From Mobula hypostoma (Eukaryota): a DNA stretch of 64,000 bases. The position numbers were made by a program, and so were the translations under genes. The stretch is taken from positions 372,001-436,000 of the forward strand of contig NW_026948113.1 of assembly GCF_963921235.1 (NCBI RefSeq), in the 5' to 3' direction. Of this stretch, positions 1,180-63,249 are shown piece by piece (position 1 is the first letter of the stretch; each line of letters begins with the position of its first letter). The notes beneath the pieces are model-generated. The model made no database searches. It worked only from the letters and a program-made list of their open reading frames with translations, and was not told the DNA's origin.

Positions 1180-1189
1180 GTTTACATAC

Positions 1190-2110: not shown

Positions 2111-2112
2111 GG

Positions 2113-2875
2113 GATCCCCCCACCACCAAGCACATCATTCCCTGTCCCCCCACCACCAAGCTCATCATTCCCTGCCCCCCACCACCAAGCTCATTATTCC
2201 CTGCCCCCCATCACCAAGCACATCATTCCCTGCCCCCCACCACCAAGCTCATCATTCCCTGTCCCCCCACCACCAAGCTCATCATTCCCTGTCCCCCCAC
2301 CACCAAGCTCATCATTCCCTGCCCCCCCACCACAAAGCACATCTTTCCGTTCCCCCCACCACCAAGCACATCATTGTGCCCCCCCCACCAAGCACATCAT
2401 TCCCTGCCCCCCACCACCAAGCACATCATTCCGTGCCCCTCCACCACCAGGCACATCATTCCATGTCCGCCCCCACCACATCATTCCACCCCCCACCACC
2501 AAGCACATCATTCCACTCCCCACCACCAAGCACATCATTCCGTGCCCCCCCACCACATCATTCCACCCTCCCACCAGCAAGCACATCATCCCGTGCCCCC
2601 CCACCACCACCAGGCACATCATTCCATGCCCCCGCAACACCAAGTACATCATTCTGTGCCCCCCCACCACCAAGCACATCATTCCCTGCCCCCCCCATCA
2701 CCAAGCACATCATTCTGTGCCCCCCCCACCACATTCCGGCCCCCCACCACCAAGCACATCATTCCACCCCCCCACCACTAAGCACATCATTCCGCATCCC
2801 CCCACCACATTCTGTGCCCCCCCACATCATTCCACCCCCCCCCAACAAGCACATCATTCCGCCCCTTGAAAGCAG
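2113..2875. repeat. C-rich minisatellite, ~29-30 bp unit, roughly 25 degenerate copies
   Basis: Unit CCCCCCACCACCAAG(C)ACATCATTCCCTGY read directly. It explains the overlapping Pro/His-rich ORFs 2095-2948. Confidence 0.95.
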
Positions 2876-3680
2876 AACAATTGCTACACCTGCCCCTACA
2901 TCTCCTCCCCAACTACCATTTAAGGCCCCAAACAGTCCTTCCAGGTGAGGCGATACTTCACTTGTGAGCCTGTTGGGGTCATTTACTGTGTCCGGTTCTC
3001 CCAGCCCAGCCTCCTGTATATCAGTAAGACTCAACGTAAATTGGAAGACCATTTCGCGGAGCACCTATACTCCATCTGCCAGAAGAAGTGTGATCTCCCA
3101 GTGGCCACCCATTTTAATTCCACTTCCCATTCCGATTCCCTCCTCCATGGCCTCCTCTACTGTCATGATGAGGCCACACTCAGGTTGGAGGAACAACATC
3201 TTATATTCCGTCTGGGTAGCCTCCAACCTGATCGCATGAACATCAATTTCTTGAACTTCCGTTAATGCCCCCCCCCCACCTTCTCCTTCACCATGCCCCT
3301 TTCGCTCTCTCACCTTATCTCCTTGCCTGCCCATCACCTCTGTCTGGTGCTTCTCCTCACTTTTCTTTCTTGCATGGCCTCTGTTCTCTCCTATTGGACT
3401 CCCCCTTCTCCAGCCCTGTATCTCTTTCACCAACCAACATCCCAGCTCTTTACTTCATCCCTCCTCCTCCCAATTTCATCTATCACTTTGTGTTTCTCTC
3501 TCCCCTCCCCCACCTTTTAATTCGACTCCTCATTTTTTTTCTCCAGTCCTGCCAAAGGGTCTCGGCCTAAGATGTCAATTGTACTTTTTTTCCATAGATG
3601 CTACCTGGGCTGCTGAGTTCCTCCAGCATTTGGTGTGTGTTGCTTGGAATTCCAGCATCTGCTGATTTTCTCTTGTCTGT
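2866..3680 (+). mobile_element. Penelope-like element 3' part (GIY-YIG remnant plus terminal repeat)
   Basis: ORF 2945-3265 (YFTCEPVGVIYCVRFS...LLYISKTQRKLEDHFAEHL...LRLEEQHLIFRLGSLQP) is a PLE GIY-YIG domain. A decayed hammerhead-like motif lies at 3544-3581. Confidence 0.85.
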
Positions 3681-30390: not shown

Positions 30391-30466
30391 ATGGAGAGCT
30401 GGACCGGACCGGTATCGCTCCTTGTCACCGCGTTATCTCTCTGCTCTGTCGCGGGAGACCAGGCAG
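30391..30466 (+). CDS. MHC class I-like gene, exon 1 (signal peptide)
   Basis: GCAATGG Kozak; MESWTGPVSLLVTALSLCSVAGDQA; phase-1 donor G|GTGAGG, which joins exon 2 to give D-S-H-S-L. A weaker in-frame ATG lies at 30373. Confidence 0.8.
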
Positions 30467-31769
30467 GTGAGGCGAGGGTATGTGACGGCGTTGGTCGGGG
30501 GTTGTGTCGGGAAATTCACCTTTAAATCTTTTGGAGTTCCTGGCTGTTGCTCCATTAGGCGGGAAGACGAACTCATCGCACTCCTGTGTTCTCATTTCAC
30601 TCTTGTGAAATTTCTGAAGTCGATAAACTCGGGGCAAAATGTACCTTGAATATGTTTCAGCGGTGGGTAGTTTGGGGTCTATCGCCAGTTCCCAAAGAGG
30701 AAAGTCCCACAATCTTAACAGAGGCATCACATTAAAGCAATTAATCTGAGTTTAACTATCCCTTAACTGCCACGTTACGTCAGTCTGTTTCACAATACCA
30801 GAGAAATACTCCTGTTCTACCCATTCCTCTAGGGTCTGCACACACATAGCGGTCCGAGTGGCCTCTTTCTGTGCCTTATGTGTGAATGACTTCTCTGCTA
30901 ACAAAAACTAACTTGATTTCTCTCATTCCAAGTTCTGTCTCAGGCTCCCGAATCTGAAACATTCATTCTTTGTCTCTCAACCAATGCTACCCGAACTGTT
31001 GCAAGATTTCCACATTAGTTCTGTTTCTCTGTCCTCGCATGCTATCGGAACTTTCCGTCTTTAACTTGAGACATTAACAGTTCCTCTTTTCCCCAGATAC
31101 TGCCTGGCCTGTTGACTATTGTCAGAACATTTTCTTTCTATTTTCAAAGTGCATCAAGAGTTGGCTCTAAGTTTTGGTGATTAATGTGGTAATAGACTGG
31201 CAGAACATTGATGCATGTTATGTACAAGGACTTCTGGGAGGTTTTGTAAAATCGCCAGGTTAACACCGCTCATGCCAAATGATGCAGCGGGAAGTGGAGG
31301 TCGTTGCCAGTGGACATGAGTGGCGAGTTCATCAAAGCTCTGGTGTTGGGGTGGTTGGTCAGTATGTTTACACATGGCAGACTATGGGAGAGTGTTCTGT
31401 GTCTGCACCGGCTGCTTACAGAAAATACAATGAAAAAGGAAGCAGAAAAATAGAAGCAATAAATCACAAAGAACAATATTGCTCAGTTTCAGATACCTTA
31501 GGTAACAGGGAATTTAGAACGCTCAGAGAGGTCATGTTCAGTCACATTTATTGTCATATGCATAAGAATGGTTAGACAGATAAAATGAAAATCTCGCTTG
31601 CAGCAGCATTACAAGCAGGCATATTCAGGGCACACACAATGACAATTATGCAAAGTTTATGCAAGTCAATGAACAAAAAATTACTGCAGATTGAGACATC
31701 AGAGCAAAAAAAAAACTGAATCAGAGATGCCCGGTTGCAGTAGTACACGGGAAAGCAACAGTGGCCGTG

Positions 31770-34530
31770 CCTCTGGCACTGAGTCTGGCCCTGTGGCTCA
31801 GAGGGGTAGGGAACTGAAGAGGGTGGCAGCAGTAATAGGAGATTCTGTAGGCAGGGGGACAGATGGGTGATTCTGTGGATGCAAAAAGGAAAAACACAGA
31901 TGGTAGTTTGGCTCCCAGGTGCCAGGGTCTGAGATGTTTCTGGACATGTCCACAATATCCTGAAAAGGGAGGGTGAGCGGAGAGAAGCCGCATTACATGT
32001 TGGTATCAATGATATAGGAAGGAAAAGGGATGAGGTCCTGTAAAAAAGAATATACGGTGTTAGGAAGGAAGCTGAGGAGCAGGACCTCAAGAGTAGTAAT
32101 CTCAGGATTGCTGCCTGTTCTACATGACAGTGAGGATAGGAATAGAATGAGGTGGCAGATAAATGTGTGGCTGAAGAATTGGAGCAGGGGAGAGGGATTC
32201 AGATTTCTGGATAATAGGGCCCTCTTCTGGGGCAGGTGAAACCTGTACAAAAAGGGATGGGTTGCATTTGAATCCAAGGGGGACCAATATTCTTGTGGGC
32301 AAACTTACTGGAGCTGTTGGGAGTGGTTTAAATGAATATAGCAGGTGGATGGGAACCAGGATGATAGAGCTGAGGATGAGCCTGCAGGTTTACAAGAAGA
32401 TGATGGGTGTAACATGTATGTAAGGAAGGACAAGCCAATGATTGGGTACAATTGCAGACAGAGCAAAGAGTTAAATTGTACCACAGAGGCAAAATTCAAA
32501 AGGGCGAAGAATGCAGGACTGAAGGTGCTGTATTTGGAATAAGGTGGAAGAACTCGTGGTGCAATTAGAGATTTTTCTGTATGACATTGTGGGGATCATG
32601 GAGCTGTGGCTGAAAAAAGGCCAAATTTGGGACCTCAACATCAAGGGATATACATTGTAAGGAAAGAACAGGCAAAAAGGCATAGGCAGTGGTGTGGCTC
32701 TGTTGGTAAGAGATGGAATTACATCTTTAGAAAGAGGTGACATAGGGTCAGAGAATGCTTGTGCTTGAGTTTACTCAGGGAAAGGCTATCTTAGATTGAG
32801 TGTTGTGTATTGAATTGACTTTATTACTTACATACTTCGTAATCTTTACGTTCGTCTCCATCTAAATGTGCAATGTGTAATTTATAGTAATTTATAATAA
32901 ATAGTATGTACAACATAGAAATTCAGTTGTGCCAGCATGAATTAAGCAGTCTGATGGCCTAGTGAAAGAAGATGTCCTTCTTGGTCCTGGCTTTCATGTT
33001 GTGGTACCGTTTCCCAGATGGTAACAGCTGGAACATTTTGTGGTTGGGGTGACTCAGGTCCCTAATGATCCTTCAGGCCCTTTTTACACACCTGTCTTTG
33101 TAAATGTCCTGAATAGTGGGAAGTTCACATCTCCAGATATGCTGTAATAACCCAGATCTTATCAGGGCGCTTAACATAAAGGATTCCGTAGGAGACAGTG
33201 ATCAAAATATGATGGAATTCATGCAGCAATTTGAGAGGGAGAAGCATAACTCACATGCATCAGTATCGCAATGGAATAAAGGGAATGACAGAGGCATGAG
33301 AGCGGAGCTTGCCCAGGTGGATTGAAGGAGAATACTAGTGGGGATGACAGCAGAGATGGCTGAAGTTTCTGGGAATAGTTCACAAGGCGCAGGATAGATA
33401 TGTGCCACAGAGGAAGAAGTTCTCAAATGGCAGGGCTAGGCAACCTTGGCTGACAAAGAAAGTTAAGGACTGCATAAAAGTCAAGGAAAGGACATATAAG
33501 CTAACAAATGTGAGAGGGAAATTGGATGATTAGGAAGCTTTTAAAATCCAACAAAAAGTAGCTAAAAAGGCTATGAGAAGGGAAAAGATGAAATATGAGG
33601 ACTGACTAGCCAATAATATGAAGCAGGACACCAAAAGTTTTTTCAGTTGTAGAAAGAGTAAAAGGGAAGTGAGAGTTGATATTAGACCACTGGAATATGA
33701 TGCTAGTGAGGTAGTAATGCAGGACAAAGAATTGGCAAAGGAACTTAATGGGTACTTTGCATCTGTCTTCACTGTGGAAGACACTAGCAGTGTGCCAGAG
33801 GTCCGTGAGTGTCAGAGAGCAGGAGTGGGTGTTTTGCTGCTACAAAGGAAAAAGTGCTAGCCAACTTCAAGGGTCTTAAGGTGGATAAGTCACCTGAGCC
33901 AGATGGACTATGTCCCAGAATCTTGAGAGAGGTTGCTGAAGATATAACAGATACATTGGACATGCTCTTTCAAGAAAAGCCAGGAAATAATAATAAGACA
34001 CTAATCAAGCCACACTTAAAGCATTGTGAACAGTTTTGAGCCCCATATCTCAGAAAGGATGTGTTATCATTGGAGATAGCACAGAGGAGGTTCAGGAGGA
34101 TGATTCTGGGAATGAAGAGGTTAACGTATGAAGTGTTTGGCAGCTTTGGACCTGTACTCACTGGAGTTTAGCAAAATGTGGAGTGATCTCATTAAAACCT
34201 ACTGAATGTTGAAAGGACTTGTTGGGGTGGATGTGGAGAGGATGTTTCCAGTGGTGGAGTATCCAGAACTAGAGAGCACAGCCTCAAAATTGAGGGGTGG
34301 CCCTTTGGAACAGAAGTAAGCAGCAATTTGTTTTAGCCAGAGAGCTTTAAATCTGTGGAATGCTCTGCCACGGACTGCCAAGTTTGTGCATATATTTAAG
34401 GCGGAAGTTGATCGTGATATGACGAGGATGCAGTGTATGGGGTTGAGTGGGATCTGGATTCAGCCATGATGGAATGCGGAACAGTCTCGACGGGCTGAAT
34501 AGCCTAAATCTGCTCCTTTGTCTTATGGTC
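31770..34530 (+). mobile_element. CR1 LINE (ORF1 esterase and ORF2 remnants) in intron 1, interrupted by a Rex1-type 3' fragment (~32775-33135, -)
   Basis: VIGDS and LHVGINDI (SGNH-type ORF1), LKVDKSPEPDG, and a CR1 3' end. Confidence 0.85.
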
Positions 34531-34599
34531 TGAAAGGTGCAAGAGGCAGTCTGTAGTGTTTCATTGCTGTTGTAGGGTTAGGATTGTGCAGGTTGGTTC

Positions 34600-36880
34600 A
34601 ATAACTGATGTCTGTAGGAAAGTAGCTGTTGCTGAACCTGATGTTGTGGGATGTCAGTCTTCCGTCCCTCCTGCCCGACAGTAGCAGCAAGAAGACTACA
34701 TGATGCGAATGGTGGGAATCCTTGATGGTAGATGTTGCCTTCTTGAAGCAGTGCCTCCTGTAGATACTGCTAGTGTTGGAGTAGGATGTGCCCATGGTGG
34801 ATCAGGCTGTGTCCACCATTCTCTGCAGCTCTTGTATTCCTGTCTATTGTAGATTCTGTACCAGGTTTTGATGCAGCTAGTCAGTAATGTCAAGATTTTA
34901 AAGAAAGTGATTCTTCTGCAGAGTCAGTACAGTCCTCCTGGGTCCATCAAACACCCATTTACACTCGTCTAATCTTATTCTTCCCTCATTCGCATCAACA
35001 CCTTCCCAGATACCACCACTCACACACACCTCAGGGGTGATTTACAGCAGCCAATTAGCCCACCAATCCACACATCTCTGTGGTGTGTGAGGAAATCAGA
35101 GCAACCAGGGGAATCCTATGATATCTTTCTCTGAGATGACAACACCGGGCAGTGCAGAACTGGGATATGCCCTTCAGCCCAAGATGTTGTGCCAAATTAA
35201 TTAAACCGGTAACTAAATGCCTTACTAATCTTAACCCTTCTGCCAATGTCCATATCCTTCCATTCTCTGCAATTCATGGGCCTTTCTAAGTGTTTCTTAA
35301 ATACCTCTAATGTATTTGCCTCCACCACCAGCCCTCACAGCTGATTCCAGACACTGACCACTCTGTAAAATAAACATTGGCCTACAAATATCCTCTGAAC
35401 TTATTCCCTTTCACTTGAAATATATGCCCTCTACTGTTAGATATTTTGACCCTGGGATGCCCCCGTAATCTTATAAACGTCTATCAGATCTTCCCTCGGT
35501 CTCTGTCACTCCAGAGAACAACTCCTCCTCCGCATACACATCACCGAGGATCTCAAATGGTCTGAACATACCAGCTGTTTGGTGAAAAAGGCACAACAGC
35601 ATCTCCTTCACCTCAGACGGTTGAAGAAGTTTGGTGTGGCCCCCCTCCAAATTCTAAGAACTTTCTACAGGGGCACGAATGAGAGCATCATGACTGGCTG
35701 TATCACTGCCTGGTACAGGAACCGTACCTCCTTTAATCACAGGACTCGGCAGAGAGTGGTGACAACAGCCCTGCTCATCTGGAGATGTGATCATCCCACT
35801 ATTCAGGATATTTACAAGGACAGGTATGTAAAAAGGGTCTGAAGGATCATTGGAGACCTGAGTCAACCCAACCACAAACTGTTCCAGCTGCTATCATCTG
35901 GGAAATGGTACCGTAGCAAAAGAGCCAGGACCCACAGGCTCCAGGACAGTTTCTTCCATCAGACTGCTTAGTTCATGCTGATGCAACTGTATTTCTATGT
36001 TATATTGACTATCCTGTTGTACATAATATTTATTATAAATTACTACAATTCTACATTGCACACTTGAACGGAGACATAATGTAAAGATTTTTACTCCTCT
36101 TGTATATGAAGGATGTAAGTAATAAAGTCAATTCAATTCAATTCTTATGTCCTCTAATCCAGGAAGCATTCTGGAAAATCTCTTCTGCACTTGGATACCT
36201 GGAACAGTCTTGTTACCATAAGACCATAAGCCATAGGAGCAGAATTAGGCCATTTGGCCTATCAAGTCTGCTCTGCCATTTCATCCAATTTTACTCACAG
36301 CTCCAATCTGTTGCCTTCTCCCTGTATCCCTCCATGTCCTGACCAGTCAAGAATCTCTCAACCTCTGCCGTAAATATACATAACGGCTTGACCTCCACTG
36401 CTGCTAAGTTGCCTGTGGCAAAGGATCCCACAGATTCACCATTCTCTGGCTAAAAAAAATTCCTCCTCATCTCTGTTCTAAAAGGACAACCCTCTATTCT
36501 GAAACTGTGTCCTCTGGTCTTCGACTCTCCCACCATAGAAAACATCCTCTCCACATTCACTCTATAAAGGGCTTTCACAATTTGACAGGTTTCAAGTAGG
36601 TCCCACCTCATTCTTCTGAATTCTAGTGAATACAGACCCAGAATCAACAAATGCTCTTTATGTGACAAGCCTTTCAATCCAGGAATCATTTCCATGAACC
36701 TTCTTTGAATCCTGTCCAGTTTCAGCACATCTTTCCTAAGGGGCCCAGAATTGCTCACAATACTCCACATGAGGCCTCACCAGTGCTTCATGAAATCTGA
36801 ACATTACACATTTGCTTTTATATTCTAGTCCTCTTGAAGTGACTGCTAACTTTCAATCCCACTTGGGCTACATCACTCAG
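34600..36880. mobile_element. Intron-1 LINE fragments: Rex1-type (-34600-34880; +35520-36145 with (CAATT)n tail) and CR1 (-35130-35520; -36215-36880)
   Basis: ORFs 35579-35842 (KKAQQHLLHLRRLKKFG) and 36450-36770 (LYSLEFRRMRWDLLE). Confidence 0.75.
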
Positions 36881-37607
36881 CTTCTTTCCTTTGACATTGA
36901 TCACTGCATTGGTGCTGCTCCCCACATTCAGACAGAACTGGAAATTATTATTTTCCTTGCTCCCAATTCTTAGCCTATTCTCCTCCTCACACAAGGCATA
37001 TCTAAGTCTTCCCTACCCTCACTACATTCACAAATGTCCTTTCAACCTACAGACTCCAACAACTATCTTTACTTTTCATCCTCCCACTCTGCCTCTTGTG
37101 GGACTCCACTACCTCTTTTCTGTGCTCTTTCTCTGTCACCTTTGCTGCGATGATGAGAATTTCTACACTGGTGCCCCGGAAATGTCTTCTGCTTCTCCTT
37201 GAACCTTGGTTTCCTCTCTATCATGGTGGACTTATGTTCCAGTATGTTTGCCTCTGACTTAGAAACAACTCTATAGTGGGAGTTGGTGCTCCTGTTTCCC
37301 TGCTGCCATTGACCTCCTTTGTGCTGGGGTTTGGGTTGTTTTGTTGGATTGGCTTCAGTGAGTATCTGCTTAGGATTTTGTTAACGGCCAGAGCAGTGAA
37401 GCAAGTTTTCATAGTGTTGGTTGCTCGTGTTTGGGGAGCTAATAAAGGGGGGTGGGAGTGCTGCCTGATCCAGTAGGATGTCTGTTTGGATGTGTATTAA
37501 TCCATTCAAGTGGCGAGTATACCATCAAACTCCCGAGTTGTGCGTTATAAATTGTGAGCATCCTTTGTTGTGTTCTGACACTCCTCTCTCTCTGTCCTTT
37601 TACTCAG

Positions 37608-37856
37608 ACTCACACAGCTTGATGTATTACTACTTCCAATCCATCAACATTCCTGAAATGCCAGCTTTCTTCAGGATTGGGATGCTCGATGACTTGCAGA
37701 TAGACTACTACGACAGCACACTCCGTGAAGTAGAAGTCAAGCACCAGTTGATCGCAGATGGCTTATCGACCAACTACCGGAAAGAACAGAAAGAAATAAC
37801 CGACCAGTTTTATAATTTCATCTTGACAAATCTGAAGCAATTTGCCTTATTCGTTA
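37608..37856 (+). CDS. MHC class I-like gene, exon 2 (alpha1 domain)
   Basis: Polypyrimidine-CAG acceptor and GTGAGT donor; 249 bp, phase 1/1. Translation DSHSLMYYYFQSINIPEMPAFFRIGMLDDLQIDYYDS...NYRKEQ... follows the class I alpha1 pattern. Confidence 0.93.
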
Positions 37857-38319
37857 GTGAGTGTCTTTGATCTCCACTACCCTTTGAGTATCACAGTGAC
37901 TTGCATATTGCCAATACTTTGATGTTCTATTAGATCTGATTATGTTGTATCCAGTTTGAAGTCCTTCACTCTTTCAAATCTCTCAAATCTCCATTCTGCT
38001 CTCTACCTTTCTTAACTCCAATTACAAGAATTCCATCCTAATCATCTGGGTAAGTTCTGACCCTTCAAAATAAACTGATTATCCAGTCCTCATTCCCCAC
38101 GGACCTCTTCAGAGAAACAGTGAAAATCAAACCCACTGTCCATACAGGCTTTGCCTGGCTCAAACCCTAATCCTAAGCCTACTCCCCAACTCCAGACTTG
38201 GGGATGCTTCAGTCTAGGATGGTTTGGCACTAAGTCGTCTATGGTTCTTATCTAGTCACCTGCCACAATGACGCTTTCCAGATCGAATTCGGTGAGGGGA
38301 CTCCATGCATTAGACCTAG

Positions 38320-39680
38320 AACGCTACAACACAGGAAAAGGCCCTTTGGCCCAAAATGTCCTGCTGAACTAATTGTATTAATAATCAAATGTCAAACTAA
38401 TCTCATCCTTTCTGCCTACACAATGTCCATGTCCTGCTCGCCTAAGCTTCTTGAACACCCTCTTTGTATCTGCTACTACCACAACCCCTGGAAGCACAAC
38501 TTAGGAACATGCCATTCTGTAATAGTCTTACCCTGCACATCTCCATTGAACATACCCCCTTTTCCATCCCCTCTTGTATTAGACATTTCAACTGAGGGAA
38601 AAATAATACCAGCTGTCAACTTTAAAACAGAGAAAACAGCCCAAATTGGTCAAATCACTTGTTATAGCACATGCCATCCAATCCAGGCAGCATCTGGTAA
38701 GCATCTTCTGCACCTACTCCAAAGCCTCACCGTCACAGAGTGACCAGAACTGCTGTGTTGCACACTCTGTGCTTATTGACACTGAATACAAACATGTTGC
38801 TTTCACTATTCTCCGCTGTAACTCTCTGCAGTGGACATGGTTCAGCGCAGACTGTACAGTGCAGTCTCTCACTGTGAGCCCCTGCTCTGACCCACATGTT
38901 GACAGAGTCCTTCAATGTGCCCCCTGCTTTGTATGTACAGTACTATGCACTGCACAGTGTTTCAATGTGATCTCTGTACTGTGCACTCTGCATAAGTTCA
39001 AGCTCGAGTTTATTTCTGATCGTAGGCTGACATACACAGGGTACAAATGCCATAAAATCACTGTTTTACAGCAGCATCATGGTATATTACAGGACATGTT
39101 AGCATGGAGTCAATTTTAAATAAATATGCACAACCAGCACATGTGCAAAGTAGTAGTAGTCGTAGTTGTAGTCGTAGTAATCATACTTTATTGATCCCGG
39201 GGGAAATTGGTTAATTGGAAATTGGAAAAAGGTATACAACAAAATTAATTTAACAATATTTGTGCAAGATTAAGAGCCAAGAATATAATCTAGGGTCTCG
39301 TTAAGGCTTTTCTGGTTGGTTAAAGAACCTGGTGGTATTGGGCATGGAGCTCTTGTTGGAGCCTGAGGTGTTAGTCCTTTGGCCTCTGTCCCTCCTTCCT
39401 AGTGGTAGCATCAAGAAGAGAGTATGTCCTGGATGATAGGGAGGGTGTGGCTCCTGGTGATGGATGTTGTCTTCCTGGGAAGTTGCCTTCCGCAGATGTC
39501 CTCAATTGTGGGGAGAGCTGTGCCTGTGATGGGCCTGGTTGAGCCCAGCACCCCCGCAGCCTTTTGTCTTTCAGGGCTTTGGAGTTTATCTACCAGCTGT
39601 GATGTAACCAATCCGAATGCTTTTCACTGCACGTTTGAAAACATTGCCATTCGTTAATGACAAATTGAATCTCTTTAAAC
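38320..39680 (-). mobile_element. Intron-2 LINE fragments (CR1 ~38320-38760; Rex1-type ~39145-39680 with (CTA)n tail)
   Basis: 3'-end signatures shared with other copies in the window. Confidence 0.65.
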
Positions 39681-39944
39681 TTTCCCCTCCCACCTTGCCG
39701 TGTAGATAGTTGCTCACATTGATTACTGATTCCACCAGACCCTGTGATCTGTGCCACACCCTGACAAATGTTCTATATAGGACACTTCACCCCATGCTCT
39801 CGGCCTTAACTGTACACAGTCGCTCACCGTGACCCACTACTTGGTGCACCTCTTAGTCACGTAGCATTTACGTATTTAGCAGACCATTATCTAGTATTGG
39901 AAGCTTCAGCCATTAATGTTAATTAATCTGTTGATAATTTGCAG

Positions 39945-40205
39945 GCTTCAGCTACATACAAGCACTCTGGGGCTGCGCACAATCTGGAGATACGGTCAAC
40001 GCGATTCTAAAAGCCAACTTCCAGGATTTCGGAGTGGTCAGCTGTGATATCAACACAGGGAAATGCACTGGCACTGGTTTCCTAGCAATGTTCAATGATC
40101 AATTGAGCCAATTCAGATTCACTGACGTGACTGCATTGAAGAGTAACTGCACTTGGTATTTGCAAAGGGCTGTTCAGCTTGGAAGAGAAGCATTGGAAAG
40201 GCAAG
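39945..40205 (+). CDS. MHC class I-like gene, exon 3 (alpha2 domain)
   Basis: TTTGCAG acceptor; 261 bp, phase 1/1. Translation SFSYIQALWGCAQSG...VSCDINTGKCTG...KSNCTWYLQRAVQLGREALERQ contains the canonical Cys pair. The donor is AG|GCAAGT. Confidence 0.9.
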
Positions 40206-40224
40206 GCAAGTGGAACATCCTGCG

Positions 40225-40525
40225 ATGGAGAGGGAACTCCCAATTCAGCAACATAAAGGATACCTCAGTCTGAGACGATTATGGGGCTCTGAGACCGAGA
40301 TGGTGTGGGCTGTCATGATTCAGGATACTGAAGGATTTGATGATCTAACAAATTGATGGTGTTCCCAATCTGGGACAGAGAGGGATCTCCTGATCTGGAC
40401 AGTAAGGAAGCTTCCAATCAGAGATGCAGAGGGATCTCCTCATACGGGAAAGAGAGGGAGCTCACAAAACAAAATGGTTAGGGGGTTCCCAATCTGCAGT
40501 AATGAGGGATCTCCTAATTTGAAAC
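40225..40525. repeat. Degenerate ~25-bp-period tandem array (~12 units) at the start of intron 3
   Basis: GGGATCTCC-like cores at about 40232, 40257, 40283, 40307, 40332, 40358, 40382, 40406, 40431, 40456, 40481 and 40506. Confidence 0.7.
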
Positions 40526-40964
40526 AGTGAGTTGATTGGAGTGTACGGCCTACAGGCCTGGAGGTGGACTGTAAGCCCATGATTGGCTCCATTGCTTCTC
40601 TCTGACTGAGGCGTTGAGCAAGTTTGAAGTGGACGAGGCCAAGTGCGGAGGCCAGGCTGGTGTTTGGCGCCATCTGCTGCGTTTGGCTGGTATTCCTCTC
40701 CCTTTTACTAGCTGCTGTTGGAGGAAAGTGCAGGAGGCTTGGGTTCCACATTGCAGGGATTGATCGGTGAGGCTCGTGGTTGTGACTCTTTTTGGAGGAC
40801 TTTAGGGTTCATGTATTTCTGGATTCTGGTTACCCTTTGTTTCCTGTTTCTAAGTGGTTTGATCAGGGTGCATCAGTGCGCACTGGGCGTTTCAGCGAAG
40901 ACTGAATCTGCGGCCTGCATTTGGCTAGTGGCAAGGCACTGAACTAAACTGAGTACATCTGGAG

Positions 40965-43760
40965 TTGATAAAACCATAAGATATAGAAGCAGAATGGGGC
41001 CATTTGGCCCATTGAGTCTGCTCCGCCATTTCATCATGCTGGTCCATTATCCCTCACAGCTCCAATGTCCTGCCTTCTCCCTGTATCGCTTCATGTCGTG
41101 ACTATAAAGAATCTATCAATCTCTGCTTTAAATATAGTAAAGATGTGGCCTCCACAGCTGCCAAGTTGCCTGTAACAATGAATTCTACAGATGTACTGCT
41201 ATCTGGCTAAAGAAATATTTCCTGATCTCCATTTTAAAAGGATGCCCCTCTACTCTGCGTGTCACAGAAATTTACTATTGCTGATTAAACAAGGACACAG
41301 ACCCCAGTATTCTGTTTAATTACTTACTTACATGACCATGGAGAGCCCACTAAAAGACTCTGCTAAAGTGAGCACAAGCATGGTCTTTTATTCCTTAAAA
41401 TACATGCAATTCAGCAGTTTTCAGGAGTCAAGAGTTCCTGCATAGACCTTATTGACAAGATTCAGGATGCTTCCATACCTTACACAAACTTAGATACACT
41501 ACACTCAGCCCCCTTCTTCCAGATCGTTAATGTATATCATGAACAGTTGCAGCCCCAGCACAGACCCCAATGGCACACCACTCACCACTGACTGCCAACC
41601 AGAGAAACACCCAGGTATCCCAACTCTCTTCTTTCTATTAGTCAACCAATCTTCTATCCATGCTAATACATTAGCCCCAACTCTGTTGTTCTATTTTGGT
41701 AAATTATCACCAAAGCCTTTACTGTAACTTCTGCCATTTCTTTCAGTACCCTGGGACTTATCTATCTTCCGGCCCACACGATTGCTCAGCACTACCTCTT
41801 TAGTGATAGCTATTGTATCAGGTTCTCGCCTCCCATTGCGTCCATAACATCTGTCTTTGGCATGTTAGACGTGTCCTCCACCTCCACTGTGAAGACCGAC
41901 ACAACATAGATCTAAAGCCTCTGCCATTTCCTCATTCCCCAATATTAATTCCCCTTCTCGTCTTCCAAGGGACTGATGTTCACTTAAGCCACCCTTTTCT
42001 GCTTTATATAATTATAACAACTTTTACGATCTGTTTTTATATTTTGTGCTGGTTTATTTTCATAGTCTATCTTCCCTTCCTTCACTGCTCGCTCAGTGGT
42101 TCTATGTTGCTTTTTAAAGTTTTCTCAATCTTGCATTTTCCCACTGCTCTTGGCAAATTTGTACAAACGAGCTTTTAGTTTGATGCTTTCTTTCATTTTC
42201 CACCCTTGCTTACTTACTTGCTCCCCACTTTTATCTGGAATACATCTTCTTCTATTGTTTGTACATACCCCGCGCCTTCTGAATTGCTTCCAGAAACTCC
42301 ATCCATTTATGCTCTGCCACCATCCCTTTCAGTGTTATTTTCAAATCAATTTTGACCAGCTCCTCTCTCATGCCTCTGTAATTACCTTTACTCCACTGTA
42401 ATCCAGATACATCTGACTTTAGCTCTCCTTCTCAAATTGGATGGTGAATTCTATTATATTATGATCACTTAACCCTAAGAGTACCTTTACCATAAGCTCT
42501 CTAAACAATTCTGGTTCATTGCACAACACTCAATCCAGAATAGCTGATACCCCAGTGGACTCAACCATGAGCCGCTTTAAAAAGCCATCCCGCAAGCAAT
42601 TCCACTTCTTGGGATCCAGCACAAAACTGATTTTCCAATCTACTTGCATATTGAAATTCCCCACAACTATTGTAACATTGACCTTTTGGCATGCATTTTC
42701 TATCTCCCATTGTAATTTGTAGACCACATCCTTACTACAGTTTAGGGGTCTGTATATAACTCTGATCAAGGTCTTTTTACCCTTGAAGTTCCTTAGCTCT
42801 ACCCACAATGATTCAATATCTTCTGACCCGACATCACCTTTCTAATGATTTGATTTCATTTTTTACCAACAGAGCAATGCCTCCACATTTGCCTACCCTT
42901 TTGATACAATGTGTATCCTTGAATGCTATTACCACACAAAATCATACATGCCAATCTGTAACTGTGCTACAAGTTCATCGACCTTATTCCAGAAGAGAAC
43001 CCCTGCCCTCTCCACTAATTCCTTGGCCACACATACAGCTGCCAAATCATACTATTCTTACCTTCACTGGCACTTGGGACAGGCAGAAATCCAGTGATTA
43101 CTACCCTGGAGGTCCTGTTTTACAGCTTTCTACACAGCTCCCTCAAATCTCTCTTCAGGACCTCCTCAACTTATCGACCCATCTCATTGGTGCCGAGATG
43201 CACCAAGATTTCTGGCTGCTCACCCTCCCTCCTGAAAATGCAATGGACCTGATCCGAGACATCCGTGATCCAGGCAATTGGGAGGCAACATACCACCTGG
43301 GTGTCTCCATCGTGCCCACAGAATCTTGTCTCTGTTCTTCTGCCTGTGGAATTTCCCATCAACACTGAAGTCTTCTTCACCTCTCTGCTCTTCTGAGCCA
43401 CAGCATCAGATTCAGTGCCAGAGAGGAGGTCACTGTGGTTACCCCCGGTCGATTGTCCCCTTCAACAGTATCTAAAGTGGTACATTTATATTGAGGGGTA
43501 TGACCACAGGTGTACTCTGCACTGGCTGTGCATTTCCCCTCCTTCTCCTGACAGTCACTTGTCTACCAATCTCCTGCAACCAAGGGTGACTACCTCCCTG
43601 TAGCTCCTATCTATCACTTCCTCTTTCTCCCATATGAAGCTAAGGTCAGTGAGCTGCAGCTCCAGTTCCTTAACACATTCTCCGAGGAGCCGCAGTTTGA
43701 CGCACCTGGTGCAGATGTGTTTATCCGAGAGACTGGATATCTCCCAGAATACTCACATCT
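40965..43760 (-). mobile_element. CR1 LINE with internal deletions in intron 3
   Basis: ORF 43171-43401 (VVCCLPIAWITDVS...VHLGTNEMG, ORF1 esterase), ORF 42530-42808 (WVELRN.KGKKTLI.VIYRP, APE) and a CR1 3' end near 40970. Confidence 0.85.
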
Positions 43761-44462
43761 CACACACAGTATGAGACACTGCCCCTGGAGTCATTCTCAC
43801 TACACTATGATGCCCTAACAGATGAGGAATGGACAATTAAGAACAAAAATACCCCTGCTTGGATGTTTGATATCCTCTGTGTTGCTAGTTCACTTTTTGC
43901 TGTTTGTGCAATCTGTTCCCTCCCTGCATCTTGCGTGTTTGATGTTTTCTTTGAACGGGTTCCTTGGTGCCTCTTTGTTCCTTCGCTGCATCGGAGGATA
44001 AACCTCAGAGTTGTATTCTGTATAAACAATTTGGTAATTAATCTACTTTGAATCTTTGAGTGAGGGCGCTCCCAAATGGAGACATTGACTGATCTCCCGG
44101 TCTGGGGCAGTGAGGGACCTTCTGATCAATACTGCTGTGCTGAGGGCATTCTCCATCTTGCAGTTTGAGGATGATCTGAATTTGGGATATTGCACGACTG
44201 CTGGACTGGGAATAGTGCCTGTGACCTTGATCTGGACCTGTCCGATGAATGAAAGTAATCTCTGTCTGTAGTCTGCATGAGCTTGGGCTGGGGAGGCTGA
44301 TTTCAGATTAGATGGTGAGTGTAATAGTGAGGCCGATCACATTCTGAGGCAGTGAAGGATGTGAGAGTAATCCCAACATTGAACACTGTAACTTCAGTCT
44401 GTAACGGTAAGGTAACATCAGCCTGAGTTGAGGAGGTGACATAATTTTTGATTCTTCCCCAG

Positions 44463-44738
44463 TTGCTCCAGAGACTCAGGTGTTGACAAGGAGGCCGACA
44501 GCTACTGAAGGCAAGAGTCTGTCGTGCATCATCACTCCCTTCTACCCCTGTGCTATCAATGCCACTTGGCTGAAGAATGGGCAGGTTGTCTCTGAGGGCT
44601 ACAACGTGACTGTGCTACCAAACTACAATGATACATACTGGATGGAACTAGTCATTGAGCTGCAGGGCAACGACCCGAACATCTATACTTGTCATGTCGA
44701 GCACAGCAGCCTGCCAAAGGCCCTGATGGTGAAGGGAG
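44463..44738 (+). CDS. MHC class I-like gene, exon 4 (alpha3 Ig C1 domain)
   Basis: TTCTTCCCCAG acceptor and G|GTAGGT donor; 276 bp, phase 1/1. C1-set motifs LSC...FYP...W.KNG...LPN.N.TY...YTCHVEHSSL. Confidence 0.95.
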
Positions 44739-47031
44739 GTAGGTCATTGTACGGTACAGGATTTGCTTCATTCTGCCTGTGGTGGTTCATGGACTCATGC
44801 AGCAGAGAAGGGGGCTCTTCAGTCTACCTGATTCATGCAAATCCAATTCATGCAAACCCTCTAGTTCTCAAAAACACTTGGCCCGTCCCCTTCTTTAACT
44901 CGATGATTCAACTGCTCATCTAGATACGTCTTGAAAATTATAGAGGTCTCTGCCTCCACCATCTCCTCAGGCAGTCCATTCCCAACTCCAAAAACCCCCT
45001 TGATGAAAGTATGCTTCTGTAGATTCCCTATAAACCTCTTAGTCATTATCTTAAACCTACGTCGAGTTATAGGCACCTTTACTATGGGGAAAAGTTTACT
45101 ACTGTTCAAGCAAACACATGAAGTGGAAGCATAAACTGCAGCAAGTAAAACCTGTAGCATTCTTCAGAATCAGAATCAGGTTTACTGTTGCTGGCATCTG
45201 TTGTGAAATTTGTTAAGTTAGCAGCAGAACAATGCAATGCATGATAATATAGAAAAAATATAGAACAAGTAAGTAAATCAACTACAATAATTATATATAT
45301 GTATATTGAACAGATTTTAAAATAGTGCAAAAACAGAAATAACATATATTTTAAAAAGTTCTTCCAACATTTTCTATGTATTTCCTATCTACACCCCTAA
45401 TAATTCTGTATAACTCCATCAGGTCCACCCTCAGTCTCCTCCCATCTAAAGAAAACAAAACCAGTGTATCTATTCTCTCTTCTCATTCCATCTGAGCCAC
45501 ATTCCGGCGAATCTCCTCCGCACTCTGTCCAATGCAATCACATCTCTCCTCTGCTCTGGTGACCAGAACTGTAAACAATACTCAGAATGTAGCCTCACCG
45601 ATGTTTTATAAAGCTGTACCATAATTCCCATGCCCTTGTATTCCATGCACTGATAACTGGTATCTCATACACTTCCTTCACCACCCTATTTACCTCTTTG
45701 AAAGACCTAATCAAGCATCTCCACCATAAAGCTGCACCATAAGTTCCCTTCTCTTGAATTCTATGCCCTGATCAGTGAAATCCAGCATCCTGTAGGCTAT
45801 CTTCACCACCTTGTCCTCTACTTTGAATGACTTGCTCAAGTAGCCCCACTCTTTCTCACACACCTCTGAAAATTTCTTAATTCCAAGAACATATCCCATT
45901 TCCATTTTGGAAGTTATTATTTACCGTGCTCTTTTATCACTTGAATTAAATCTGTTCCTTCTGCTCACCAGATGTTACAGAAGCAGTTGAGCTGTTGGTC
46001 AAAGAAATATAGTAAGAACTCAACAGAAATAACAACTAAGAAGCAATTGGGACTGTGGGGAAGACCTGACTGTCAAGTGGTCACTGCCTGGCTGTTGGGT
46101 GTTTGATTGTCATAGATTCGTAGAATTCTGCAACAGAGAAACAGACCCTTCAGCCCAACATGCCTTTGTCAATCAAGATTTCCATTCAAAGAAGTCCCAT
46201 TTATCCTGGCCCATATCTCCCTAAACCCTTTAGACCCATTTACTGGTGGATGTATCTTTTAAAAGATGTTAACTTGTCTGCCTCAACCACTTCTTCTGGC
46301 ACCCATAAATTGACCATCATGTTGCCACTCAGGTTCCTGTTACATCTTTTCTCTCTTAACTTAAACCTATACCATCAGGAGCCCTGAAAAATTATTGTGC
46401 ATTCTCTCTATGCCCCTCAAAATTTTATATACTTCTCTCTATAGCTCAGCCCCCTACACTCCAGGGAAAATAATCCCAGCCTATCTTGTCTCTCATTATT
46501 TCTCAAGCATTCCATTCCTGGCACCATCCTTGTGAATCTCCTCTGCATCCTTTCCATCCTAATGACATCCTTCCTTCCTCAAAGCACCTTCTATTTTCCT
46601 ATCCTGCAATATATAAGATACTACCCACCCAGGACTACCCTCCCCCACACCCCCCCCCCCGCCCCCCGCTTCTCCAGCTCCCATCAGGCACAGATACAAA
46701 AGCCTGACAGAATGTACTACTATGATCAATGAACACTTCTGTCTTTCTCCTGTGAGAAAATTGAGTGGACCCAAACATAGTAAGATAGGCATCTGACCTC
46801 ACAATCTAACTTTTAATGGTCTTGCATCCTATTGCCAGCTAGCACCACACATCCTCTGTAAAAGTAATACATTACTCTGCATTCTGTTATTGTTTTCCCT
46901 TGTACAAACTTAATATCCTGATGTAATGATTTGTATGGACGGAATGCAAAACATGTATTTCCACTGTACCTGGTAACTGGTGACAATAATAAAATAATTT
47001 ATACATTTACCGATCTTTACTTGGTGAACAG

Positions 47032-47108
47032 GAGTTGGTGAGCCCCATGGTGCAGGTCCTATGTTGGGGCTGATGACTGTGTTTGCGATAATCTTTGGAA
47101 TGATGTAG
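47032..47108 (+). CDS. MHC class I-like gene, exon 5 coding part (C-terminal hydrophobic segment ending in TAG)
   Basis: Phase-1 acceptor; GVGEPHGAGPMLGLMTVFAIIFGMM*. The exon continues to donor GTGGGT (after 47144) or GTAAAC (after 47148). It is colinear with the paralog at 61963-61851. An alternative in-frame acceptor lies at 47054-47055. Confidence 0.82.
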
Positions 47109-47234
47109 AGGTGCAGCAAGGAGAGAACCAAGACATCACTGGAGGTGGGTAAACGTACAGATGCCTTTGTTAAACCTGCTTGCTGTGACAGTATTAGACT
47201 GTACATTCAACCTCCTCTCTTTTCTCCTTTGCAG

Positions 47235-48375
47235 ATCAGCATTTGGCTCTAACTCAAGCACAGTTCTGAACACAGGGTGCAGCTTCAAACAGGCTTTTTT
47301 GATGAGTGACCGCACACCTCAGCAAGCTTAGAATCAGAATCAGATTTAATATCACTGGCATTGATTGTGAGATTTGTTAACTTTACAGCAGCAGTACAAT
47401 GAAATTTACAATAAATAAAAAACTGAGTTATATAAAGTATATTTATGGCTGTTAAGTTAAAATAAGTAGTGCAAAATAACAGAAATAAAAGAAGTAGGAA
47501 GTAGTGTTCATGGGTTCAATGTCCATTGATAAATCGGCTGGCAGAGGGGAAGAAGCTGTGCCTTCAGGCTTCTGCGCCTCCTTCCTGATGGCTCCAGTGG
47601 GAAGAGGGCATGTCCTGGGTGGTGGTGGATGTAGCCTTCCTAAGGCATCGCTCCTTGAAGATATTTTGGATACTATGGAGGCTGGTACCCCGATAGATCT
47701 GACTAATTTTACAAGTTTCTGCAATTTGTTTCAAACTTGTCCAGTAGTCCCTCATAAGAGATGCTGATGCAGCCAGTCAAAATGTTCTCCATCGTACATT
47801 TGTAGAAGTTTTTGAGTGTTTTAGTTGACCTACAAAATCAACACAACCTCCCAATAAAATACAGCCGCTGTCTTGGCTTCTTTATAACTGCATCCTCAGA
47901 GATGTTGACACCTAGGAACTTGAAATTGCTCATTTTCTCCACTTCTGATCCCTCTATGAAGATAGGTTTAGCGTTACATCCACTGTGGGAACTTGCCTGC
48001 TGAATCTTCTGCTGCTTTGAACAGCTCCCGTTTAGCTATGTCTTAAATTTTTTCTTACATCTGAGAAAGATTTCAAGTTTCAGTCTTGCAGTGCACTGAT
48101 GTTTGACACTCATTTGTAAGGTCCCTCTCCAGTCCTAATTCCACCACAAACGCCATATGTCAAATCATTGCTCTGAAGTATGAATGCCTGTTTTGAACAC
48201 TGGACAGCCAAGAGTAATTCTTTTCTTCATTGGAGATTGGCAGGGTCCAACATTTAGTTTATAATATGAGCAGAAACTCTGGAATGCTGTGGCAATTTGG
48301 TGAATGAGAGAGTACAAAATTTGAGGATTATACAATGGAATAAATATGGTTACTTTCCCTGTTGTATTGTTGGGC
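47235..48375 (+). other. Terminal (3'UTR) exon of the class I-like gene
   Basis: Strong acceptor CCTCCTCTCTTTTCTCCTTTGCAG. Homology to the paralog 3' end runs on both sides of a LINE insert. AATAAA at 48349-48354. Confidence 0.65.
47332..47967 (-). mobile_element. Rex1-type LINE 3' fragment inserted in the 3'UTR
   Basis: (ATTCTG)n tail, TTAG on both sides (47328-47331, 47968-47971), and absent from the paralog. Confidence 0.85.
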
Positions 48376-61886: not shown

Positions 61887-61963
61887 CTACACCACTTTAA
61901 CCATCATCGTAAGTGTCGCCATCAGCCCCAGCAAAGGACCTGCACCACGAGGCTCCCCGGCTC
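61887..61963 (-). CDS. Paralogous class I-like gene, C-terminal exon coding part
   Basis: GAGEPRGAGPLLGLMATLTMMVKVV*. 56/77 nt identical, ungapped, to 47032-47108, with the same acceptor context, same TAG position and same GTGGGTAAAC donor. Confidence 0.85.
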
Positions 61964-63249
61964 CTACTCACCAAGTAAAGATTGGTAAATTGGTAATATT
62001 TTAAATTGTTGTCACATGTACTGAGGTACACTGAAAAATCTTTGTACTGCATGCCATCCACAGATAATTGCATTACAATTGCACATTGAGATAATACAAG
62101 GGGCAAAAATAGCAAAATGGAAAGCAACTTGTAACAGTTACAGAGGAAGTAGAGAGCAGGCACACAGTAAGGAGCAAGGGCCACAGTATGGTTGATCGTG
62201 ACATCAAAGGTTAAACGTGCCGTACTATGGAACTCTACAATACTGTTATAACAGCAAAATAGAAGCTGTCCTTGATCATCAGTGTGTGCTTTCAGGCTTT
62301 CGTACCTTCTGCTCAGCAGAAGGTGGGGGAAGAAGAAAGAATTTATGGTGCAGGCGATGTCTTATTCACTGGAGCTTAGGAGAATGGGGTGATCTTATGC
62401 ATATTAACGAAGGAAGGAAGTCATTAAACTGGAAAAGGTGTACAAAATATTCTCAAGAACGTTGCCAAGAAAGGTACACTTGAATTAGAAGGGGAGGTAG
62501 CATAGCTTGGCATTATTTTCCCTTGAATGTAAGAGGTTGAGATATATAGAAAAACGTATAAAATCATAAAGAGCATAGAGAGGATGAATGCACAATCTTT
62601 TTCCCAGGATTTGGGCATCAGGAACTTTAGGACAAAGGTTTAAGGTGATTAGTGAAAAATTATAATAGAAACCGGAGGGCCAACATTCTCAAGCAGAAGT
62701 TGTCAGCACAGGGAAGGAGATGCAAGAGAAAGTGGTTTTGGCAGCTACATTAACAACATTTTAAACAAAAAAAAAAAAATCACTGGAACCAGTAGGTAGA
62801 CAGGAAATGTTTGGTAGTATATGGGCCATGGTAGGAATCTTGGTTGGCATAGACCAGTTGTGCAGATGGCCTGTTTTTGTTCCGTAAGGGTCTATGACTT
62901 CTCTAAATGTCAGTCATTTCTCAGCCAGGCAGTGGCCATTGGACAGTCAGACCTTGACCCACAGGCCCAATCACTTCTCAGTTGTTTCTTTCCTTGAGCA
63001 TCTATTATGTTTCTTTGGCCCATAACTCATAATTGCTTCTTACGACTGAACACAAACAAGAGAAAATCTGAAGATACTGTAACCTTGTAAATAATAACTT
63101 TCAGCAAGGACATGGGACATGTTTTTTGAAGAAAGAAACTTTCAGAGGCGTGTAAGAGAAGAATGGAGCTACTTGATCAGCTCTTTCAAAGTGGTAGACA
63201 CGGTGGTAAAGAAAGCCTACAGGATTTATTAATCAGGGCATAAAATATA

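Follow-up and report, generated by a model that had tools for sequence, protein, structure and literature searches.

The 64,000-nt window analyzed here, a stretch of the lesser devil ray (Mobula hypostoma) genome, contains on its forward strand a gene coding for an MHC class I-like protein. Splicing of the window sequence joined five exons (76 + 249 + 261 + 276 + 77 nt) into a 939-nt coding sequence of 312 amino acids with a TAG stop codon, all introns being in phase 1. Exon 1 (30391..30466) carries the start codon and the signal peptide (MESWTGPVSLLVTALSLCSVAG...) and ends in phase 1. It is followed by exon 2 (37608..37856), which encodes alpha1 in 83 codons and includes the motif GMLDDLQIDYYDS, by exon 3 (39945..40205), which encodes alpha2 in 87 codons, and by exon 4 (44463..44738), whose 92 codons form an alpha3 domain of the Ig C1-set type. 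The coding part of exon 5 (47032..47108) comprises a short linker and a hydrophobic tail of 16 to 17 amino acids (GPMLGLMTVFAIIFGMM), with the TAG at 47106-47108. All four acceptors are AG and three of the donors are GT. Intron 3 instead has a GC donor at 40206-40207 (AAG|gcaagt), a feature of the gene that the earlier note on this DNA does not mention.

That note had given the same five phase 1 exons, coding length and domain sizes, and it was exact in each of them: residues 7-318 of the RefSeq protein P0158 (Mobula hypostoma) match the spliced protein with 100% identity. The gene is not hidden, as the note had it, because RefSeq already annotates it with exactly this five-exon model. P0158 starts at an in-frame ATG at 30373, 18 nt upstream of 30391, and relatives from other species start at the MESW position in the alignment. 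Downstream of the stop codon, exon 5 continues on the same strand as 3' UTR (47109..47144) up to the donor GAG|gtgggtaaac, and this region, donor included, is conserved in the paralogues A', B and C described below. From the word content and an acceptor (ttgcag| at 47235) we infer a 91-nt intron in the 3' UTR (47145-47235, forward strand) and a further UTR exon from 47236, although no joint between them was seen.

The gene is intact, and its transcripts are spliced as the model predicts. Contigs from all four RNA-like runs contained the joint between exons 3 and 4 (40205->44463) at the predicted sites. In all four runs these contigs showed 0 differences from exon 3. Loose ends of contigs at 39945 corresponded to the end of exon 2 (last 30 nt) in runs X2-X4, and those at 44739 corresponded to the start of exon 5. 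Furthermore, unique intron sequence adjoining the exons had a depth of zero in the RNA-like runs, and repeats within the introns reached a word depth of >1000 for parts of intron 3. We read the four runs as RNA because their contigs are spliced and the introns are empty. The joint between exons 1 and 2 is known only through length, from one 1135-nt contig that extends 358 nt ahead of exon 3. In the runs that contained 92-100% of the words of exon 3, 15% of the words of 47146-47290 were present. At base 44549, the reference has a T (Cys225) and all four runs have a C (Arg); arginine is the state of codon 225 in every relative, and cysteine occurs only in the reference. With regard to the surrounding repeats, Pfam found one match above the cut-off (ALKBH8_N-like, 35579-35842) and two below it among the transposable element (TE) open reading frames of the introns, so that the case for calling this DNA TE-dense is the very high depth of repeats seen in the RNA-like contigs.

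We then examined the domains of the protein. Pfam MHC_I is matched at 18.7 bits, short of its cut-off of 28.3 bits, and C1-set is matched with an E value of 4.9e-13 by the whole protein and of 3.5e-14 by exon 4 alone. The claim that the locus holds a complete, intact and divergent non-classical class I-like gene is correct. All structural cysteines are kept, the reading frame is open and every splice site is usable. In alpha2, the pair Cys119/Cys177 is accompanied by an extra pair, Cys142-x6-Cys149. AlphaFold gave a pLDDT of 86.8, and the predicted fold consists of a class I alpha1-alpha2 platform and an Ig C1 domain. A fold search with this predicted structure returned class I structures at Z 22-24 over about 260 residues, including UGA (9CH4, Z 23.6), UFA (8GM8, Z 22.8, 38% identity) and peptide-binding class I molecules of birds. 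Because all Z scores lie within about 1 of each other, the fold search does not distinguish UFA from ordinary class I.

Judged by its sequence, the gene is a member of the elasmobranch UFA lineage of non-classical class I. Nurse-shark UFA (8GM8, named as such from the title of its PDB entry) was the best PDB sequence match for alpha1 (E 5.4e-12, next best 7.5e-6), for alpha2 (E 1.1e-8, with no other credible PDB match) and for alpha3 (E 4.4e-24, next best 3.6e-17). In a maximum likelihood tree (LG+C20+F+G4) that did not include CD1, MR1 or the named UAA, UBA, UCA, UDA and UEA sequences, 21 ray and 9 shark UFA sequences formed one clade with a support of 100/100. UGA, a Heterodontus class I of unassigned lineage and the class I sequences of coelacanth, lungfish, caecilian and squamate fell outside. 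Within the clade, the branching follows the species groups, that is, sharks, skates, electric ray, sawfish, stingrays and mantas. We also noted three marks of the lineage, taken from our own reading of the alignment and not from a published definition: the C-x6-C pair of alpha2, the loss of 4 residues at the end of the alpha1 helix and the motif GMLDDLQ. They were found in the window protein, in 8GM8 and in the Cetorhinus, skate, sawfish and stingray sequences; Heptranchias is without the Cys pair and has GKLDDLQ in place of GMLDDLQ. The shortening of alpha1 and alpha2 that had been remarked upon earlier was confirmed and proved to be a trait of the UFA lineage.

The earlier note had also considered that the gene might represent a new lineage. 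A new class I lineage merely resembling UFA would be consistent with an identity to shark UFA of only 38-41%, with the MHC_I score below the cut-off and with the fact that the ray family is multicopy, whereas UFA has been described as single or low copy (PMC12562908). However, the 100/100 clade with shark UFA and the branching by species groups inside it largely refute this reading. Additionally, the C-x6-C pair, the deletion at the end of alpha1, GMLDDLQ and a tail-less C-terminus are all shared. A search with shark UFA as the query returned shark UFA and this ray family and nothing else, and in the searches no other family fell between the ray genes and shark UFA. A new lineage is thus not supported and appears very improbable; the gene clusters inside a lineage already characterized by 8GM8 and showing the same features, an outcome that the note itself had named as making the gene known rather than novel. 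Our literature searches on 8GM8 and on UFA/UGA found passing mentions of UFA and no primary paper on it. In these mentions, UFA is described as CD1-like, with crystal and mass spectrometry evidence of lipid binding (PMC10751288, PMC12562908); besides PDB titles, this rests there on "unpublished data" or "personal communication." UFA is placed in a class Ib cluster together with UDA and UEA, one flank of which is formed by brd2 and beta2m (PMC10751288, PMC12562908).

Next, we looked at the genomic setting. Pfam MHC_I matches in the genome are confined to 27.98-32.0 Mb of scaffold C12 and to two small scaffolds, C13 and C15. The UFA copies on C12 are located at 28.87-28.97 Mb, with class I genes on either side (27.98-28.02 Mb and 30.09-32.0 Mb). 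C13, the 516-kb scaffold of the window itself, bears a Pfam-positive class I gene (C13:353030-355597) and a BET-domain gene (C13:214192) that has no counterpart on C12 and that we consider a candidate brd2. The gene thus lies in an MHC class Ib cluster near a candidate brd2. Pfam MHC_II_beta gave no match in this genome, but the control genomes were equally silent, which makes this result uninformative.

The ray's own genome yielded five alpha1 and five alpha3 matches, namely copies A and C on C13 and copies A', B and C' on C12. A and C are collinear with A' and C' over at least 45 kb at 94-97% identity and could therefore represent a second haplotype, which would leave at least 3 loci. C13 may be a plain haplotype copy of C12, but it also bears the BET-domain and class I genes that C12 lacks, and we count up to five UFA loci in this genome, which departs from a single or low copy number in either case. 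Similarly, 4-6 annotated proteins of this family are present in each of Mobula birostris, Hemitrygon akajei and Hypanus sabinus. Paralogues A and B differ at 13.1% of bases in the alpha1 and alpha2 exons, compared to 3.9% in the introns and surrounding noncoding DNA, and the variability between paralogues is concentrated in the helices that form the groove. In contrast, alpha3 and the tail are 91-95% identical among paralogues. The pN/pS between paralogues is about 1 or higher and reaches 1.6-1.8 for alpha1 and alpha2. A pN/pS of >1 was not taken by itself to prove selection: the counts are small, and divergence at synonymous sites likewise exceeds that of the introns. The divergence in the groove exons could also have come from exons exchanged between copies rather than from selection. 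We propose only tentatively that, in mantas and stingrays, UFA may have expanded into a small family of GPI-anchored molecules whose groove exons were driven apart by selection.

The C-terminus differs from that of classical class I, in which a cytoplasmic tail follows the transmembrane segment. It terminates after a hydrophobic run, without a cytoplasmic tail, and reads ...VKGGVGEPHGAGPMLGLMTVFAIIFGMM-stop, i.e., small residues and a short spacer ahead of a hydrophobic end that no charged tail follows. This pattern, which is of the GPI signal type, is kept across the clade. In the alignment, skates through sharks keep the hydrophobic end without a tail and the stop falls in the same column, except in an alternative isoform from Narcine and in the crystal construct, which is truncated. 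The hydrophobic tail of exon 5 is a candidate GPI attachment signal. The same molecule could also be a tail-less transmembrane protein held by its short hydrophobic end, without a GPI anchor, since a run of 16 to 17 residues could cross a thin membrane. However, no charged residue follows the run, and small residues (G-G-V-G) lie 6-8 positions ahead of it, as in GPI signals. In addition, the automatic naming in RefSeq chose mouse Q7 (Qa-2), a GPI-anchored molecule, as the closest name for a stingray relative, although this is no more than a hint. Insertion by the hydrophobic end is possible but somewhat doubtful, and we favor the GPI anchor.

The position of the stop codon raised the question of whether the gene is an expressed but functionless copy that is becoming a pseudogene, crippled by a stop mutation where its membrane segment ends. 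Past the TAG, the frame gives the basic, stop-transfer-like RCSKERTKTSLE and then a splice donor, as in a classical class I transmembrane exon. A neighboring inverted copy bears defects, and the pN/pS values between copies would also be in agreement with decay. Nevertheless, the stop position is kept in the aligned full-length UFA sequences of rays and sharks and is thus ancient, and we rejected the reading in which a transmembrane exon was recently broken by a nonsense mutation at the TAG. The frame, the structural cysteines and the splice sites are all preserved, and correctly spliced transcripts were present in four samples. Furthermore, the conservation of alpha3 and the tail next to variable groove helices is a pattern unlike uniform decay. 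Loss of function is unlikely on these grounds.

To characterize the groove, we aligned the protein with a classical-type caecilian sequence (P0134). Most of the residues that hold the peptide termini in classical class I are lost, which is another trait of the UFA lineage: the segment around position 84 is deleted, and T143, K146, W147, Y159 and Y171 are all replaced. Only the equivalents of Y7 and Y59 are kept. Their retention, together with the peptide-binding bird molecules among the best fold matches, would be compatible with peptide presentation as in classical class I. However, the replaced residues argue against this, as does the platform, which is far more hydrophobic than that of the classical-type sequence (hydrophobic fraction of alpha1-alpha2 of 0.41, compared to 0.43 in UFA and 0.31 in the classical type). 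Moreover, the nearest solved relative is described as lipid binding (PMC12562908). Peptide presentation is hence highly improbable, and a hydrophobic ligand is the preferred reading.

Overall, we assign a probability of about 0.8 to the reading that the gene encodes a lipid-binding (CD1-like), probably GPI-anchored class Ib heavy chain of the UFA lineage and belongs to a group of recent paralogues in the lesser devil ray. Such a molecule would hold a hydrophobic, non-peptide ligand in its unusually hydrophobic groove, as in shark UFA, and display it at the cell surface. There, a GPI anchor would probably substitute for the tail-less hydrophobic C-terminus, and beta2-microglobulin would be the probable partner. 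Since the identity to nurse-shark UFA is only about 38%, the ligand could differ from that of the shark. Likewise, the paralogues differ mainly in the groove helices, suggesting a somewhat different ligand for each copy.

The gene call made from the sequence was correct, yet the gene was in RefSeq and its lineage had already been named and had a crystal structure. What is new here is modest: UFA is multicopy in mantas and stingrays, and its groove exons outpace noncoding DNA. The names that RefSeq gives to this family (MR1-like, CD1d-like, Q7-like, zinc-alpha-2-glycoprotein-like and HFE homolog) can be replaced by UFA, and UFA is more than a single-copy gene in myliobatiform rays. Among the copies, divergence in the ligand-binding exons runs at about three times that of the introns, and alpha3 and the putative anchor remain unchanged. 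If selection indeed drove the groove exons apart, the ray family would amount to an independent, polygenic means of displaying differing lipid-like ligands, analogous to mammalian CD1a-e. Should UFA prove to be an old molecule of lipid presentation, its variants in rays would form a natural series for questions on its ligands, and rays could be used to address whether innate-like T cells reading UFA exist in cartilaginous fish.

We finally compared the ray gene with known systems. Mouse Qa-2/Q7, ULBP/RAET1 and MILL, which are GPI anchored, share the short terminal hydrophobic run preceded by small residues, but they belong to unrelated lineages, and GPI anchoring in the ray is predicted. Shark UGA (9CH4; Pristiophorus P0116 and P0101) is likewise an elasmobranch class Ib molecule called CD1-like, and its fold match is equally good. 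Unlike the ray protein, it is outside the UFA clade, at 28% identity, scores 97 bits with Pfam MHC_I, and has full-length alpha1 and alpha2 domains, a transmembrane segment and a cytoplasmic tail. CD1 also has a transmembrane segment, plus a cytoplasmic sorting tail. The CD1-type Pfam model MHC_I_3 gives no match to the ray protein, and relatives match it only below the cut-off (22 versus 35 bits). The likeness to tetrapod CD1 lies in a proposed principle, with several differing copies in a genome and a hydrophobic groove for a ligand other than peptide, and rests on the UFA literature (PMC10751288, PMC12562908) and on amino acid composition. The closest system is shark UFA, known from nurse shark (8GM8) and from orthologues in Cetorhinus, Carcharodon, Chiloscyllium, Heterodontus, Heptranchias and others. 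It is the best match in three domains and shares the 100/100 clade, the short alpha1 and alpha2, the alpha2 C-x6-C pair, an NATW sequon in alpha3, the hydrophobic platform and the location in the MHC class Ib region. The tail-less hydrophobic C-terminus is common to the full-length orthologues as well, the 8GM8 crystal construct excluding that part. At about 38-41% identity, however, the ray genes form a branch of their own that is multicopy and in which the introns diverge more slowly than the alpha1 and alpha2 exons.

Three-frame translation and splice-site inspection exactly reproduced the gene described in the earlier note, five exons joined in phase 1 into a 939-nt CDS of 312 aa. Exon 1 (30391-30466, 76 nt) encodes the signal peptide, exon 2 (37608-37856, 249 nt) the 83 codons of alpha1, exon 3 (39945-40205, 261 nt) the 87 codons of alpha2, and exon 4 (44463-44738, 276 nt) the 92 codons of alpha3, while the coding part of exon 5 spans 77 nt (47032-47108). 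All junctions are in phase 1; three introns are GT-AG, and the donor of intron 3 is GC, set in a strong context (AAG/gcaagt). Family sequences were gathered by a profile-free alpha3 search and by a word-based search started from a stingray relative. By local BLAST against these sequences, the spliced protein was 100% identical across all 312 residues to residues 7-318 of the RefSeq Mobula hypostoma protein P0158, titled [quoted passage not shown] and located on a 516,489-bp contig, the length of the scaffold carrying the window. RefSeq thus already contains this five-exon model with its GC donor, and, contrary to the earlier note, the gene is not hidden. RefSeq departs from this model in the start only, taking an in-frame ATG at 30373; in the alignment, relatives from other species begin at the MESW position. 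The context of the 30373 start is weak; the downstream ATG at 30391 has G at -3 and +4 and matches the start position of relatives in other rays. Within intron 1, an ORF at 35579-35842 (+) matched Pfam ALKBH8_N above the cut-off (3.1e-6). This domain is suspected to ride on retrotransposons in fish genomes, and the ORF is likely repeat-derived.

The window protein contains a Pfam C1-set domain (4.9e-13), but its MHC_I score of 18.7 bits lies under the 28.3-bit cut-off, indicating that the gene is divergent. When the domains were searched separately, the best PDB sequence match of each was 8GM8 chain A (alpha1, 5.4e-12; alpha2, 1.1e-8; alpha3, 4.4e-24), and beyond 8GM8 no credible match to alpha2 was found among PDB sequences. 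This entry, "shark nonclassical MHC class I, UFA", was released in November 2024, and 9CH4, "shark nonclassical MHC class I, UGA", in March 2026. The ectodomain was modelled with AlphaFold (pLDDT 86.8, pTM 0.73), and class I structures aligned to the model at Z 22-24 over ~260 residues. The reading as a non-classical class I gene was right. An ML tree was computed from 40 sequences. The UFA chain of the nurse shark is P0183; P0116 and P0101 were judged, from their near-identity to 9CH4 segments, to be Pristiophorus UGA orthologues. UFA sequences from rays (21) and sharks (9) formed a single clade (100/100 support), outside which fell UGA, a Heterodontus class I of unassigned lineage, and coelacanth, lungfish, caecilian and squamate class I. 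Within it, the rays (skates, electric ray, sawfish and myliobatiforms) were one group (100/100). Myliobatiform UFA comprises two old sublineages, the first with one sequence per sampled species (P0154, P0002, P0152) and the second with separate expansions in Mobula and dasyatid stingrays. The window gene is a member of the Mobula expansion; closest to it is a copy on another scaffold, C12 (95% identity), followed by M. birostris proteins (82-84%). It therefore belongs to the UFA lineage. Among the checks proposed earlier, BLAST upheld the gene call and the tree removed the suggested novelty, since UFA already has a name and a solved structure.

The odd features flagged in the earlier note are traits of the UFA lineage, as they are common to its relatives in the alignment. 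The shortness of alpha1 and alpha2 was confirmed; that of alpha1 is a UFA trait, arising from small deletions common with shark UFA. One of these, 4 residues long and at the end of the alpha1 helix, takes away position 84 together with the usual glycosylation site. In alpha2, the usual Cys119/Cys177 are accompanied by an additional pair, Cys142-x6-Cys149, and this C-x6-C pair is found from sharks to rays. The Ig cysteines of alpha3 are at 217 and 272. Among the residues that bind peptide termini in classical class I, the equivalents of Tyr7 and Tyr59 are kept and those of T143, K146, W147, Y159 and Y171 are replaced. The hydrophobic share of the alpha1-alpha2 platform is 41% in the window protein, 43% in UFA, 36% in UGA and 31% in a classical-type sequence.

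Expression was examined in four runs of one study that contained 92-100% of the words sampled from exon 3. When their contigs were aligned to 39300-45100, all four runs had the joint 40203 to 44461, which, given two ambiguous letters, is equivalent to the predicted 40205 to 44463. Loose ends 5' of 39945 read the final 30 nt of exon 2, and those past 44739 the first bases of exon 5. The RNA-seq junction check proposed earlier bore out the model from exon 2 to exon 5. In the same interval, unique intron sequence adjoining the exons had zero contig depth. Given the spliced contigs and empty introns, the four runs behave as RNA. One contig of 1135 nt extends 358 nt before exon 3, which fit exons 1 and 2 plus a 33-nt leader, and 239 nt past exon 4. 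Exon 3 in the contigs showed 0 differences from the window, whereas the C12 near-copy differs at 10/261 bases, indicating that the transcripts derive from the window copy. Base 44549 is T in the reference (TGT, Cys225) but C (CGT, Arg) in the contigs of all four runs. Arg225 is the family consensus (FYPRAINATW), found in every relative aligned; the T represents an allele or else an error of the assembly, and Cys225 was carried over into the RefSeq protein. Within intron 3, 40852-41045 and 42210-42985 had word depths of ~200 to 3500 in the RNA-like contigs, with many short contigs at 95-99% identity; these are high-copy, transcribed repeats.

The C-terminal 25 residues are GVGEPHGAGPMLGLMTVFAIIFGMM. 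The hydrophobic run is followed by no charged residue and preceded, at a distance of 6-8 positions, by small residues; the aligned full-length UFA proteins likewise end after a hydrophobic run of 14-17 residues. Judged from sequence, such an end has the make-up of a GPI-attachment signal, and we favour a candidate GPI anchor over a tail-less transmembrane anchor at about two in three. Past the TAG, the frame would read RCSKERTKTSLE and then a donor, GAG/gtgggtaaac. Paralogues A', B and C conserve this sequence past the stop together with the donor. The stop appears to reflect ancient truncation of a transmembrane exon of the classical type, in favour of which a recent lesion was set aside. The conserved donor, the presence of only 15% of the words of 47146-47290 in the RNA-like runs, and an acceptor at 47235 suggest that exon 5 is probably spliced at 47144 to a predicted UTR exon starting at 47236.

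Searches with alpha1 and alpha3 found five UFA-type loci in the genome. On C13, the 516,489-bp scaffold carrying the window (C13:372001-436000), these are the window gene (A, 30391-47108) and an inverted copy, C, 34.5 kb to its right; on C12 they are A' (28.93 Mb) and B (28.87 Mb), both intact from alpha1 to the stop, and C' (28.97 Mb). An assembly gap (C12:28,888,615-28,888,814) lies immediately past B. Paralogue C, tail-to-tail with A, occupies 61890-61964 (-) and continues past the window's right end (L005/L009, C13:436001-452100). It belongs to the P0154/P0002 sublineage and has its stop codon and post-stop donor at the same position as the window gene. Tyr replaces the first Ig cysteine of its alpha3 (SLPYIITPFYP), its alpha2 and alpha3 ends look frameshifted, and its RefSeq model is only partial (P0167, 198 aa); it is probably a pseudogene.

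Between A and B, 67/510 bases (13.1%) differ in the alpha1 and alpha2 exons, compared to 460/11,690 (3.9%) in the aligned surrounding non-coding DNA (Fisher p = 1.5e-16) and 3.2% in alpha3 plus exon 5. The pN/pS ratio was 1.8 for alpha1 and 1.6 for alpha2. Synonymous divergence in these two exons likewise exceeds the intron level, on small counts, and exon exchange between copies may thus contribute alongside selection. Among 13 myliobatiform paralogues, variability peaked in the alpha2 helices and the latter half of the alpha1 helix, with a mean entropy of 0.83 in helices, 0.47 in strands and 0.25 in alpha3.

The window is collinear from 34157 to 64000 with C12:28931401-28977735, over at least 45 kb at 94-97% identity; transposon-sized insertions and deletions occur along this stretch. 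C13 also holds a BET-domain exon (C13:214192-214383, -), one of four in the genome and the sole one near class I genes; the genome search found none on C12. The exon may belong to brd2, a gene reported to flank the elasmobranch class Ib cluster. A further class I gene, 56 kb left of the window gene (C13:353030-360490, +; L006:8025-8258, L010:5237-5494), passes the Pfam MHC_I cut-off and has no C12 partner. Its alpha1 is closest to PDB chains 5H5Z and 6LUP ("MHC class I antigen/protein"), which we take to be classical-type fish class I, and its alpha3 to shark UGA (9CH4, 1.2e-19). Given the collinear stretch and these two C13 genes with no match on C12, C13 may represent either a divergent haplotype or a duplicated part of the MHC that is unplaced. 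Every class I exon in the genome that is Pfam-positive maps to C12 at 27.98-32.0 Mb or to one of the small scaffolds C13 and C15, in agreement with the published rule that class I genes of elasmobranchs are without exception MHC-linked (PMC10751288).

Overall, the gene was already in RefSeq, and its lineage, UFA, had been named and structurally solved before. Modestly new are the assignment of variously named RefSeq ray proteins to UFA, the presence of several UFA copies in myliobatiform rays and the speed at which the groove exons diverge between copies. Two papers describe UFA and UGA as CD1-like class Ib genes that are MHC-linked in sharks and rays, for which crystal structure and mass spectrometry, cited as unpublished data or personal communication, point to CD1d-like lipid ligands (PMC10751288, PMC12562908). 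Together with the amino-acid composition, this literature suggests that the ray protein may hold a lipid or other hydrophobic ligand. The window protein shares 38% identity with UFA, compared to 28% with UGA.
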